Shown one piece after another: positions 7,293 to 63,180 of a DNA stretch of 64,000 bases. Origin of the DNA: Octopus sinensis (lineage: Eukaryota); assembly GCF_006345805.1 (NCBI RefSeq), contig NC_043002.1, positions 9,920,001-9,984,000 of the forward strand, written 5' to 3'. The notes below the pieces were generated by a model that did no database searches, had not been told where the DNA came from, and worked only from the letters and a program-made list of their open reading frames with translations. A program made the translations under genes and the position numbers. Numbering within the stretch: the first letter of the stretch is position 1; each line of letters opens with the position of its first letter.

Positions 7293-7336
7293 TTACCTAA
7301 TTCCGTTATCAGTCTGTAGGATGGCTGAGGAACTGT
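7293..7336 (-). CDS. Gene A, probable last coding exon: (Y)SSSAILQTDNGIR*
   Basis: Acceptor tctcttctag, phase 1; paralog 53693-53736 has the acceptor and stop at identical positions; a GT after 40 nt means it could instead be an internal exon. Confidence 0.6.
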
Positions 7337-8019
7337 CTAGAAGAGATTCGGTCGAATTAATCGACACAGTTCCTTGTCTTTAAGGCCGGTAATTCTTTTA
7401 TTGATAGCTCTTACCGAACCGCAAAATTACAGAGATATGGACACATCAACACATGTGAAGGGAAGGGGTCAGGACACAGATACAGACAAATACTTGCGCT
7501 CACACTCTCGCACACACACTGTCATACACACGCGCGCGCACACACACATACACACTCACAACACACACCACACATACACACACACACACACGCATATATA
7601 TATATACTCTTTATCTTATTAAACTTATAATACTTTTTGATAGTTTATAAAAAAAAATAAATTAATTAATTAATATAAAAATAGAAAATAAAAAAAAATA
7701 ATTAAATAAAATAATAATAAAAATATATATATATTTATAATTTATAAGTTTAATTTATTAATTTAAATAATTTTTTAAACTTTTAACTTTAATTTAAATA
7801 TTTTAATTGGATTTTTATATTTTATATTTTATATTTTATATTTTTTTATATATTTTTAAAATTAATTTTATTTCTATGTATTGGCTTATGATTTTCACTG
7901 TTTGATTTGCCTAATAGTGGTTTTATCTCTAATTAATATAATATATATGTATATAAATATATATATATATATATATATATATATATAATATATATATATA
8001 TATATATATATATACAAAA

Positions 8020-8270
8020 ATGTTCCCCTCGAGCCATGCCAGGCTTACAAGGGCCGGTTCCCGGTTTCAGTGGTGTAGAAATTCCCCACCTGGACGGGAC
8101 GCGGGTCCGTCGCAGGATTACTCATTTTTGCCAGCTGAGTGGACTGGAGCAACGTGAAATGAAATGTTTTGCTCAAGAACGCAACGCATCGCCCGGTCCA
8201 GGAATGGAAACCACAACCTTACGATCATGAGTTCAACATCCCAACCACTAAGCCACGCGCCTCCACACAC
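8020..8270 (-). mobile_element. tRNA-derived SINE (family A variant)
   Basis: tRNA-like head ggaggcgcgtggcttagtgg; body shared with 19280-19520. Confidence 0.8.
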
Positions 8271-8427
8271 ACACACACACACACACACACATATCCAAAA
8301 TGTCATGCAGTGTAACTGAACCCGGAACCATGTGGTTGCGAAGCAAGCTCCTTACCATAAAGCTACGCTTGCGCCTATATACTGGATATATAATATGTGG
8401 GAAGATATACTATTTATATTTACTTAC

Positions 8428-8550
8428 ATATTCTTTTAATGACAACGTTGGTTCCTTTGCATTCTAGAAGAATACAATCGTATTTCCTTCTATGAAAGAT
8501 AATTTGATTGGAACAATAGCATTTTGCTTCATAAAAACAGCCTTTGCAAT
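8428..8550 (-). CDS. Gene A, Cys-rich exon: (Y)CKGCFYEAKCYCSNQIIFHRRKYDCILLECKGTNVVIKRI
   Basis: 123-nt phase 1-1 open exon with acceptor ttaactccag and donor gtaagt; same length, phase and 6 Cys as paralog 54081-54203. Confidence 0.85.
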
Positions 8551-8787
8551 CTGGAGTTAACAATAAAATACGATGCTGATTTATAATTTAGAAATTCAAG
8601 GACAGATCATTTATAGACAGACGAGATGGAGTATTGGCTATTTTCATTTGGAGATTATTGAAACTAAGAGCTTCAATGTTATCTTAATTCGCTAAAATAT
8701 CAAATTAGACTTCTTGCTTTTAGTGTATCATATAATTACCCCAATGACGAGGAAAGTTGTGTAACATACAAACATTGACATATATAT

Positions 8788-59300: not shown

Positions 59301-60290
59301 ATGAAAATATGTATAGCCACCCTTGCTAGCTACGCAGACGATACGAAAGTCTTGCAGAAAATACAAAACCTTAGCGAGTTTTCACGCCTGTAGCGTGAAA
59401 GGAAACAATTTACTGATGGGCTGAAGATAGTAATATGCAGTTTAATGCTGGAAAATTCCAAGCTCTGCACTACCAGTGCCCAACTGAACGTAAAACTTAA
59501 AGAGTATACTGGCCCACAAGGGGTTAAAACCCTAGAACTTGAACCAGTGCGAGACCTGGGTATCGACATGAATGATGGTAACTGTTTCCAAGTGCATATT
59601 ACCAAAATGGTGACAAAATGCAGATGACTTTTTGGGCGAATCCTGAGAACTCTCAGAACTAGAGATAACGAAACAATGATGGTCCACTGGAGGATATTCA
59701 TCCTCAGCCGCCTGGACTACTGCTCCCAGATTTGGTCACCACATAGTGTAAAATCAAAACAGCGGACCATGAAGCAGTTCAGCGAAGCTTCGCGAAGAAG
59801 ATCGTCTCATTGCAACAGCTCAGCTACTGGGAAAGGCTGAAACAGCTAAGACTCTATTCCTTGGAGCATAGGCGGGAGAGGTATGCAGAAGGTCCTGGAA
59901 GGAATTGTGCCAAATTTTGGCAGTGAAAGTTACACTAATGCAAGAACGGGTCATCACTTCACAGTGCCAAAGATCCCAGCAATGCCGTGGCGCTTCAGGA
60001 CCGGTTACAGCAACATCTTGGGTTTTAGGAGCTCACAACTTTTTAATATTCTCCCAAAGAGCCTGAGAGACCTACTCAAAGTGGATGTAGGTGTTTTCAA
60101 ATCAAAGATTTATCTCTTCTTGTCGAGAGTCCCAGATGAACCTAACTCGCAGCAGGAGGTGCAAATAAGGATAGTTACATCAAACTCCCTTATTCACCAA
60201 ATGCCACATATCTAAGGAGGCTCTAAAAAATAACAGTGTAGCAAAACGGTGGTCTCCAGCATGGCCACAATCTTGAGCTGAAACTGTTGA
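56390..60290 (+). mobile_element. Degenerate CR1/L2-type LINE (same group as 40807-43619), in intron 1 of gene B
   Basis: 5' CKFYLYGKCWHG zinc-finger-like remnant; colinear with 40807-43619 from ~57745; NYRPISL and YADD; shared 3' tail. Confidence 0.85.
57445..57675 (-). mobile_element. SINE family C monomer with TSD
   Basis: 21-bp TSD ttacacgtacaaaaatatacc at 57424-57444 and 57676-57696. Confidence 0.9.
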
Positions 60291-60619
60291 AAACAAATGT
60301 TATATATATATAATGGTAAAATAATTATAATTAAGGGCACAGAGATTTCTCTGCTTATATGCTGAAAAGAAACGCTAAGTCCCTCTAACCACTTCAAAAT
60401 AGCACGTTATAATAAACGCGTGTTGAGGCGGGCTGCTGAATTCGAAGAGTATATATATATATATATATATATATGAGTATATATATATATATATATATAT
60501 AATATATATATATATATATGTATATAAAATACATATAAAAATACAAAATGGGACAAGAACGCAAAACATTCAAATAGACGACACAAAAAACGGACGGGTC
60601 ATTCGAAGCCTCTAATCTT

Positions 60620-61915
60620 CAGTCAAGAACCGGATCATCCTCGCAATTTCGGCTGATGGCAGTTCTCAAGTATCATGCGATTAATTAGGAGCTGATCTTT
60701 GCATCCGTGTGTGCTTCGTTTGCATCCTTTTTGTTCAGTGGGAAAGAGGTTATTCTCTTCTATAAACGTATATGTTTTCTCCACTAGAATAGATGTCAAA
60801 ATCTTATAGGCAGTAAACGAACATGTTATAGACCGGTAGGTTTTTGGGTCTTTGGTTTCATTATTTTTGGGGAGGAGGTAAGTAATACCATTTGCCATCC
60901 AATGGGGAGTTTTTTTTTCCGGGTCTTTCATAATACTATTAAATAGTATTACTAACATTTTGTGTGCGGACGAGAGTGACGAGAGCCAGAAATTTGGTAC
61001 TCTATCAATACCAGGGGATTTCCACTTATGAGCTTTCGTTAGTGCCCTCCTTAGGTCGGCGATTGAGATGTCTTCCCATACCTGTTCTTGTAGATTTTTG
61101 TAGGCATCTTGGGTGCGTTTGATCCACTCTGCATTTTCATTGTATGGTTTCTCATCTCTCCAGATCCTCTTCCAAAAGTTTTCAACTTCTTCAATTAGGG
61201 GTGGATTTTCAGTGGTTATTTTTTTCTTTCCCTATTTCCCCGTAAAATGATTTGGCATTGGATTTGAACATCTTATTTTGTTCGTAGTATTTGATTCTTT
61301 TCTCAAATCTGCATATTCTCTGAGCTTTTGCTTGAACTTTTTGTTTAAGTGCTTCCTTCGCTGACATTAGTAGTTCTCTTGTTGAGTGTCCATACTTTCT
61401 CACAATCTTCATGCCTTTTCTTGATCTTACACCATTTCCAGAGATTAGCTCAGTTAATATCGATATCTCCCTTCGCAATGATTCAATTTCAGTTTCAATT
61501 CTACTCATCCAGTTTGATTTTATTTTCGAATTTGGTACTGTTGGCTTTTTGGGTGTGAAACAGCGTCTTTCGATTACCTTAGCAACAGAGTAAATAATTT
61601 CATTTAACTTATCAAGATCGGGTTTTAGTTGTTGTATGATTTCTTGTGTAACGCAGTTGCCAATTTTATTTGTTTTATGTTGGTGTGCATTTGAGAGTTT
61701 ATGGAGTGGTTCCCTATCATTCATATCTGTATGCCCTACAACTGCAAGCTCATTCAGAACTTCCTGCTTCATTTCAATGATAGATTTTCTGTGTTGTTCA
61801 GCTTATATGTGGTCTTCAAATTCTGTTTCGACATCATTTTCCTGGCTGTTTTTTCTAGGGCCATTACATTCTCCTTTTTGGTTTAGGCAGATGGTCGCCT
61901 CGTTATTTCTTTCCT
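60620..61915 (-). mobile_element. R4/Dong-like (RLE-type) non-LTR retroelement fragment
   Basis: ITYLLPK...YRSITC...EQKGC...GCKDQLLIN motif block; abuts a long (TAA)n run at 61917-62010. Confidence 0.6.
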
Positions 61916-63131
61916 ATTATTATTATTATTATTATTATTATTATTATTATTATTATTATTATTATTATTATTATTATTATTATTATTATTATTATTATTA
62001 TTATTATTATTATATATATAAATATACTTAAGTAGGTGAATGAATTATCCTATGTTTATCGTCAGCATGGAAAATTCGTTTAACCGAAACCTGGGTAGCA
62101 AATTCACGTCAGAAAACACGGTTGAAGCGACCTGTCAAGGGTAGAAACTCCGGGTTCATGTGTAGAAATTTGTGTGTTGTATATGAATAAATGAAAGAAT
62201 GGAGTCGAACGAAGGAATGAAAATATGCTGTCTTCGAAACATGTGTCGAGAGTAAAGGAATTTTGTTAACATCTTCGTTCGACTCCATTCTTTCATTATT
62301 CATATATATAAATATATATATATATATAATATATATATATATATATATATATATATATATATATATATTATATATATATATATATATATATATATTATAT
62401 ATATATATACATATATATAGATAGATAGATAGACAGATAGACAGATAGATATGATAAATGAAAGACGGAAGATGGAATATATGAGAATTTTTATCATTAA
62501 TCACGACGATTGCTTCAACACATCTAGCATCGACCCTTCACAGGTGGGACACTCAACAACTGGTTCAGGAGCATCCGGTGGTACAGATATATCATATCGA
62601 GTGATAAATAGATACAACACATTAAAATAACAGTTCCGCGATGTATCCTCTCATTTTAGTGAAAAGAAAAGCCGCAACACGAAGGAAACACTTTTATTTA
62701 CATAGACGATCGAAAATAAAATGGCTGATGGAAAAAATCCAATGAACATGTAATACAGCGAGAAAAAAATATATAAAATAACCGTTAGTAGATATGGATG
62801 TATGAACATAACTGCTTGGAATGAGTTATAGCAATTAAAATTTTCAGAAGAAAATTGTCTTAATACTCTCAACTCAGTGGTTATAATTGTGCGTATGCAC
62901 GTGTGTATATGTTTAAGTGCTTATATGCATACGTACGTGAGTGTATTTCTTGTGCATATGTTACATTATTCTTTATGTGCAAAATAAACCTTGAGAAATG
63001 AAAAAACTAAGACATTTCCATTATTAATGAAATTCTCCCATTCATCATTATATGCCTTACATATGTTTAATATTATGAGTCTTTCAAACATCAAATACTT
63101 AAATAAAATATCGAACCACACTTTCCCTTAC

Positions 63132-63180
63132 CTTATAAGCTTCAAGATAAGCTGCCTCAGAAATATGGAATGATATATAG
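63132..63180 (-). promoter_or_regulatory. Candidate core promoter and non-coding exon 1 of gene B
   Basis: AAG|GTAAGG donor at 63131 and TATATAT ~63173-63179; paralog of 14309-14360. Confidence 0.5.

Follow-up and report, generated by a model that had tools for sequence, protein, structure and literature searches.

What do two similar loci on the minus strand of one octopus chromosome encode, and are they genes of the same kind? Locus A (7.3-14.3 kb) and locus B (53.7-63.2 kb) lie in a 64,000-nucleotide stretch of the Octopus sinensis genome (contig NC_043002.1 of assembly GCF_006345805.1, positions 9,920,001 to 9,984,000), hereafter the window, in which positions are counted from the first letter. 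An original prediction, made from the letters alone, had described them as hidden tandem genes of three exons each, encoding 90-amino-acid (aa) precursors with a signal peptide and the cysteine framework C-x2-C-x5-C-x-C-x12-C-x4-C. Here we find that B is a complete gene with four coding exons, already annotated as LOC118763690, that A is an old partial 5′ paralog, and that both belong to a fast-evolving family that appears confined to Octopus and to one chromosome. Taken jointly, we consider this explanation likely. The analysis provides a gene model for B, a definition of the family on a ~42-aa C-x5/6-C-x14-C-x4-C module that is carried by a phase-1 exon and shared with a gastropod, and a hypothesis for its fold. 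Taxon-restricted tandem families of secreted proteins are prime candidates for cephalopod-specific biology, including chemical communication, immunity, adhesion and venom, and locus A presents a concrete case for asking whether a truncated duplicate can turn into a new peptide gene.

Gene structure at locus B

The duplication and the first two coding exons proposed for each locus are well founded. All six predicted exons (Table 1) possess AG...GT borders and the expected lengths of 106, 123 and 44 nucleotides (nt), and are joined in phases 1 and 1; at both loci exon 1 opens with ttcttacag/ATG and closes at GTAAGT, and exon 2 lies between cag/ and /gtaagt (slashes mark exon borders). The loci are colinear over four pairs of blocks with 75-89% identity (A/B: 7247-7455/53644-53840, 8295-8787/53945-54441, 10337-11057/55439-56165 and 14277-14725/63099-63575). 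When all six frames of the window are translated, the six-cysteine framework turns up at two places; in 100 local shuffles it never does.

The 3′ half of B is found further along the minus strand. By tblastn, the C-terminal halves of Octopus relatives have a single match in the window (minus strand, 45789-45661; E=1e-8). The third related exon that had been reported between the two loci is real, and is most likely B's own exon 3. It is bordered by the acceptor tttacag/ and the donor /gtatgt, agrees exactly with the RefSeq LOC118763690 protein, and shares 90% identity with positions 13090-13430 of the Octopus bimaculoides locus (L038). A pattern search (Cys, 17-23 residues, Cys, stop) located exon 4, which encodes VCLPDHVVGSKLYFIEPRVALC followed by the stop codon. 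Splicing of the four exons yields a protein of 142 aa and 12 cysteines that equals, letter for letter, the uncharacterized O. sinensis protein of LOC118763690 minus its first ten residues. This product aligns over its full length with six annotated relatives, with 12 of 12 cysteines invariant. The O. bimaculoides ortholog, LOC106872050, is likewise 142 aa long, with 80% aa identity and four matching exons, and its locus is colinear with the window. These exons occupy 8.7 kb in O. bimaculoides and 20 kb in O. sinensis, where copies of long interspersed nuclear elements (LINEs; e.g. 49564-52985) and short interspersed nuclear elements (SINEs) fill the introns.

Two further elements lie 5′ of the shared coding exons. 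The ten additional residues of the RefSeq protein derive from a short upstream exon, which may be species-specific and repeat-derived. The O. bimaculoides locus lacks the ~3-kb stretch (about 55930-59078) in which this exon sits. Further upstream, a conserved block with 87% identity to the corresponding block of A and 90% to L038:1636-2115 may comprise the promoter and a non-coding first exon.

These observations bear directly on the 44-nt exon with which both genes had been proposed to end, giving 90-aa, six-cysteine precursors. Joined as predicted, the exons do reproduce both quoted 90-aa sequences letter for letter, and at A, at B and at the O. bimaculoides B locus alike the 44-nt exon combines an AG acceptor with an open frame; in addition, alternative 3′ ends occur in the family, for example among the isoforms of LOC128248178. 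However, the RefSeq proteins of both species splice exon 2 to the 132-nt exon and bypass the 44-nt exon, whose use in B is also at odds with the four exons seen in all annotated relatives. The block that contains it is a degenerate copy, at ~67% identity, of a SINE-like element of which at least 20 younger copies (82-95% identical) are present in the ~223 kb of octopus DNA sampled, and the stop codon of the exon is supplied by the repeat's own sequence. Insertion of the repeat predates the duplication, which is why A, B and the O. bimaculoides B locus all contain the block. Downstream of the 44-nt exon, a poly(A) signal is absent from the next 500 nt in A, where the first one lies ~500 nt beyond the proposed stop, and from the next 1 kb in B. 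Neither the two 90-aa peptides nor the 142-aa model of B have an exact match in a collection of 15 billion proteins. A three-exon structure at both loci is very improbable; the product of B has 142 aa and 12 cysteines, and a 90-aa single-module product may hold for locus A alone (see below). More generally, an exon selected ab initio solely because two paralogs have it in common can be a fragment of a co-duplicated repeat.

A putatively secreted protein family on one chromosome

A six-frame genome search with the peptide of locus A, combined with a pattern scan, recovered eleven further copies of the exon encoding C-x2-C-x5-C-x-C-x12/13-C-x4-C. All exon-2 copies are 123 or 126 nt long and of phase 1-1; in each, the acceptor precedes the first Cys codon by two bases, and a GTAAGT donor lies exactly ten codons past the last Cys. 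Upstream signal exons, in which an ATG directly following the acceptor begins a hydrophobic leader (M-[FYHC]-[IT]-[YHF]-...), are present in 11 of the 12 other 10-kb pieces; A and B also possess a signal exon with its ATG at the acceptor and a phase-1 donor. Exons 1 and 2 are thus genuine family features, since the eleven copies keep splice positions and phase and signal exons sit upstream of them. The family comprises at least 13 loci, which fall into four regions of a single chromosome. Seven of these are located at 9.93-10.12 Mb (A, B and five others, one on the opposite strand), and further groups occur on the same contig at 13.14, 19.06-19.25 and 96.78-96.90 Mb; exon-3 matches are found 3.9-8.4 kb downstream of exon-2 matches. 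A match on another contig (C21; L020/L034) lacks the family splice sites and was excluded from the count.

A profile of the exon 1 and exon 2 sequences retrieved relatives of 126-133 aa that carry six more cysteines after the module-1 exon. The annotated members, B included, are precursors of 126-143 aa with 12 cysteines in two modules and a tail that ends in Cys, reaching 163 aa in models with N-terminal extensions. The precursor of B consists of a signal peptide, module 1, module 2 (C-x6-C-x14-C-x4-C) and a ~22-aa tail that starts and ends in Cys. The 3′ half of a full member, as found in B, is encoded by a phase 1-1 exon of ~132 nt and a terminal exon of the form C-x19/20-C-stop, such that each module corresponds to one phase 1-1 exon. 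Alignment of module 1 with module 2 by hhalign (E=0.044) places their cysteines in register. Both resemble diverged versions of one four-Cys beta-hairpin unit of ~42 aa, and the alignment lends weak support to an internal duplication. In a divergent Octopus subgroup (P0019, P0020, P0022 and P0023), module 1 is missing its fourth Cys and carries a Trp at the position of the Trp of module 2, so that the two modules are more alike.

Neither B nor its relatives were hidden, contrary to the original prediction: the annotations of O. sinensis, O. bimaculoides and O. vulgaris include about a dozen paralogs and orthologs under the name "uncharacterized protein". Two models from the cluster near 19 Mb look wrong. 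P0015 fuses parts of two adjacent genes, and P0018 terminates in "CK", a read-through of the exon-2 GTAAGTAA donor. For LOC118763690, LOC106872050 and their paralogs we found bare annotations, with no family name, Pfam model, structure or expression data; a literature search by LOC numbers and by UniProt and XP accessions yielded no paper, and keyword searches nothing relevant.

Sequence divergence within the family is considerable, with paralogs sharing 19-38% identity with the LOC106872050 protein. Between O. sinensis and O. bimaculoides, B shows a dS of 0.138 and a dN of 0.101, and the resulting dN/dS of 0.73 (0.62 for the mature part) points to fast evolution under weak purifying selection.

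The taxonomic reach of the family was evaluated with a seven-sequence HMMER profile, which matched 18 proteins at E≤0.001 among 1.84 billion representatives. Of these, 17 are from Octopus, as was established for the eleven that were looked up; those with a recorded contig lie on a single chromosome in each species. The sole exception is GFO08092, a protein of the sea slug Plakobranchus ocellatus (E=1.3e-5). It resembles the octopus proteins in possessing four tandem C-x5-C-x14-C-x4-C modules followed by a CKDxxGNC end similar to that of module 2, and the two modules mapped on its locus are each encoded by one phase-1 exon of ~126 nt. It differs in being a multi-repeat gastropod protein rather than a two-module one, and in lacking the extra Cys pair of octopus module 1. 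Its automatic name is "collagen alpha-5(VI) chain, partial", which no Pfam domain in the 266 aa on record bears out. Since the module occurs in a gastropod, it is older than the cephalopods, whereas the two-module secreted architecture appears, in the databases searched, only in Octopus. The family is real and taxon-restricted, yet already annotated as uncharacterized proteins. The tandem, lineage-restricted family of Cys-rich proteins with a signal peptide that had been proposed is borne out, bar the one Plakobranchus match, but B and the annotated members are not single-module, six-cysteine peptides.

Structure, age and fate of locus A

Of the parts of B, locus A contains the upstream block and the first two coding exons alone. 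Relatives of exons 3 and 4 for A were found neither in window positions 1-8427, nor in the 10 kb to the left of the window, nor elsewhere in the genome, and a cysteine-pattern scan of 18.4 kb downstream of A returned simple-repeat artefacts only, while recovering B exon 3 as a control. Without a module-2 exon and a terminal exon, A is a partial member of the family. What it retains is intact: six cysteines, the reading frame and all four splice sites of exons 1 and 2.

The partial duplicate is old and predates the split between O. sinensis and O. bimaculoides. In the latter, the final 600 bp of the B locus, situated 9.5 kb beyond the stop of the ortholog, match the upstream block of A at 85.8% and that of B at 80.1%. 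Furthermore, the exons of A are identical to those of each B ortholog at 180 of 229 nt, compared to 213 of 229 between the B orthologs themselves. The upstream blocks of A and B contain identical runs of at least 60 nt; their likeness may reflect the presence of a conserved regulatory element, the action of gene conversion, or a combination of the two.

Evolutionary rates at A were compared in three-taxon alignments (A and the two B orthologs) that cover the blocks around exons 1 and 2. Differences found in A alone account for 39 of 229 exon positions (0.170) versus 61 of 748 positions in the flanking introns (0.082; Fisher p=2.5e-4), whereas both B lineages show the opposite relation (0.026 in exons, ~0.05 in introns). 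A thus seems not to be decaying neutrally: the rate of change in its exons is about double that in its introns, and every cysteine and splice site has been kept.

This result bears on whether A is a dead fragment, that is, a non-functional partial duplicate that has yet to gain a stop codon or frameshift. Such a fate would be in keeping with the loss of two of four coding exons, with a dN/dS of about 1.05 between A and B, and with the failure to find A among annotated proteins; a word-seeded search gave no candidate, but also missed LOC106872050, whose protein shares several 5-mers with A, and is accordingly a weak negative. Against it stand the exon rate, which significantly exceeds the intron rate, and the survival, at this divergence, of an open frame together with six Cys codons and eight bases of splice sites, for which we roughly estimate a chance of well below 1% under neutral evolution. 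We regard the dead fragment as a possible but doubtful outcome.

Conversely, A alone may be a working shortened gene, in which the signal and module-1 exons are followed by a repeat-derived last exon (the 44-nt exon or another) to encode a small, six-cysteine secreted peptide. The intact cysteines, frame and splice sites of a duplicate older than the species split, the exon acceleration, which is unexpected under neutral decay, and the genome-wide absence of exons 3 and 4 for A all favor this possibility. It is opposed by the failure to find an annotated protein, by the distance to the nearest poly(A) signal, by the removal of half of a disulfide-rich protein, which may not leave a stable fold, and by the prospect that part of the acceleration lies on the stem of B. 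On balance, a working shortened gene is tenable only tentatively. A stronger version, which we consider rather improbable, holds that A is a young gene born by a partial duplication that kept the promoter block, signal exon and module 1, that it acquired its terminal exon from an exonised fragment of the ancient SINE, and that it then evolved under positive selection into a gene for a small single-module, six-cysteine secreted peptide with a function of its own, within a family of octopus-specific extracellular ligands such as chemical signals.

Several other features of the window were noted. In addition to the near-full-length LINE in B intron 2, reverse-transcriptase fragments occur at 14972-16369, 27042-28127 and 42327-43385. 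A purine-rich satellite at 23995-26086, with about 29 copies of a 64-68-bp unit, accounts for the extreme GC/AT skew of the 24-26 kb bin and for long spurious open frames on the minus strand. A 184-bp unit forms short tandem arrays at 23194-23734, 8786-9219 (A intron 1) and 57441-57694 (upstream of B exon 1), and is also present in the O. bimaculoides locus (L038:13469-13689). The string "MFIHP" at 62809, considered as a relic of exon 1, is a 15-nt coincidence and not an exon.

Table 1. Coordinates of the features of loci A and B, of other elements in the window and of the sea-slug relative (window positions unless a contig is given).
Feature	Position	Strand	Remarks
B upstream conserved block	63099-63575	minus	Putative promoter and non-coding first exon; terminus AAG/GTAAGG
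B short 5′ coding exon (RefSeq only)	56557-56586	minus	MRGLISTQDR; donor GTAAGT
B coding exon 1	55774-55879	minus	Putative signal peptide; 106 nt; ATG immediately 3′ of acceptor
B coding exon 2	54081-54203	minus	Module 1; six Cys; 123 nt; phase 1-1
B 44-nt "exon 3" of the original prediction	53693-53736	minus	Unsupported; inside ancient SINE-like repeat, intron 2
B coding exon 3	45648-45779	minus	Module 2; four Cys; 132 nt; phase 1-1
B coding exon 4	35888-35955	minus	Tail VCLPDH...ALC and TAA; behind ttttacag/
B poly(A) signal	35847-35852	minus	AATAAA; 36 nt past stop codon
A upstream conserved block	14277-14725	minus	Paralog of the B block; 86% identical to O. bimaculoides L038:28192-28629
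A coding exon 1	10667-10772	minus	Putative signal peptide
A coding exon 2	8428-8550	minus	Module 1; six Cys
A 44-nt "exon 3" of the original prediction	7293-7336	minus	Possible terminal exon; repeat-derived
Near-full-length LINE in B intron 2	49564-52985	plus	Open frames of 506 and 653 aa; endonuclease, reverse transcriptase, zf-RVT
Module sites of Plakobranchus ocellatus GFO08092	BLXT01003949.1 (L039) 18284-18412, 18827-18955, 26222-26395		26-kb gene

Proposed product, predicted fold and comparison with known families

The original prediction had recognised no named family in the cysteine framework, and the searches made here found none either. Pfam assigned no family to 14 members (B and its relatives) or to the 90-aa models even at E≤10, where sub-threshold matches such as CFEM, T4_UVSX_C and Tryp_inh are at chance level, and a search of PDB sequences with the family profile gave 0 matches at E≤10. 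The structural check that had been proposed, AlphaFold followed by Foldseek, was also carried out. An AlphaFold2 model built from 18 sequences (mean pLDDT 79, core 88-94) is all-beta, with long hairpins and a low-confidence tail, and a model from seven sequences concurs with it. For both models, the only consistent Foldseek matches in the PDB are pairs of fibronectin type I modules, whose fold joins a two-stranded to a three-stranded antiparallel sheet (2cku, 3ejh, 3gxe, 1qgb and 3cal; E 0.008-0.43, TM(target) 0.37-0.59, ~88 columns), none of which reaches E≤0.001. The predicted fold would therefore consist of two beta modules that weakly resemble such pairs.

A putative product can be outlined for B. 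The N-terminus has a 20-residue hydrophobic stretch, with a helix predicted at residues 5-23 at low confidence. Cleavage of this signal peptide would release a mature protein of ~116 aa, presumably secreted since a hydrophobic C-terminal tail is absent, and probably locked by six disulfides. With its two-finger beta architecture, the mature protein may act in extracellular binding or recognition, and by analogy with fibronectin type I pairs it could bind an extended partner strand. A prohormone was also considered and rejected, as aligned family members show no conservation of the dibasic sites (KKR, RR). Roles as a toxin, antimicrobial peptide or pheromone are guesses; none of the three UniProt accessions of the family appears in the supplements of an O. 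vulgaris skin-mucus proteome paper or a salivary-gland proteome paper, which is weak negative evidence against mucus and venom roles.

A number of points weigh against the overall explanation. The RefSeq gene models are predictions, and the signal peptide was recognised by visual inspection and from the N-terminal helix of the structural model. At A, the branch on which acceleration was measured includes the stem of B before speciation, so that part of it may belong to B. Moreover, the upstream block is 86.8% identical between A and B within O. sinensis, compared to 85.8% between A and its own ortholog, and there are signs of A/B gene conversion in this block. The hhalign result supports an internal duplication only marginally, the structural model was predicted from 18 sequences, and the lack of a Foldseek match at E≤0.001 leaves the likeness to fibronectin type I weak. 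Finally, UniProt automatically names one member, A0A0L8H3R2, "UPAR/Ly6 domain-containing protein".

This last name would imply that the family consists of Ly6/uPAR three-finger proteins, an assignment with some outward appeal given the N-terminal C-x2-C and a signal-exon plus Cys-exon layout that recalls Ly6 genes. Ly6/uPAR domains are defined by a C-terminal CC-x4-CN motif and 8-10 cysteines in one domain. The octopus proteins, however, have 12 cysteines, no adjacent CC, no C-N end, no CC-x4-CN motif and no hydrophobic GPI tail; the 14 members searched match no UPAR_LY6 or toxin model of Pfam at E≤10, and the top 50 Foldseek matches of either predicted model include no three-finger structure. 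Because no test reproduces Ly6 features, the UniProt name is unsupported here, and membership in the Ly6/uPAR family is extremely improbable.

A functional analogy, and no more, may be drawn with beta-microseminoprotein (PSP94), including the squid egg-capsule contact pheromone, which is likewise small, fast-evolving, disulfide-rich, all-beta and secreted, and has a signalling role in a cephalopod. It differs from the octopus family in having 10 cysteines as opposed to 12; the family gives no Pfam PSP94 match, and no such structure is found among the top 50 Foldseek matches.

The closest structural parallel suggested by the models is fibronectin type I. In both cases the modules are ~40-45 aa long and disulfide-locked (as predicted for the octopus proteins), and the fibronectin gene devotes one phase 1-1 exon to each type I module, as in the octopus family. 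Nevertheless, the structural likeness is weak (Foldseek E 0.01-0.15, TM 0.45-0.50), B and 13 relatives show no match to Pfam fn1, and the cysteine spacing differs, with C-x5/6-C-x14-C-x4-C in the octopus modules versus a fibronectin type I pattern that contains a central C-x-C. Modules of the fibronectin type I kind are generally considered characteristic of chordates.

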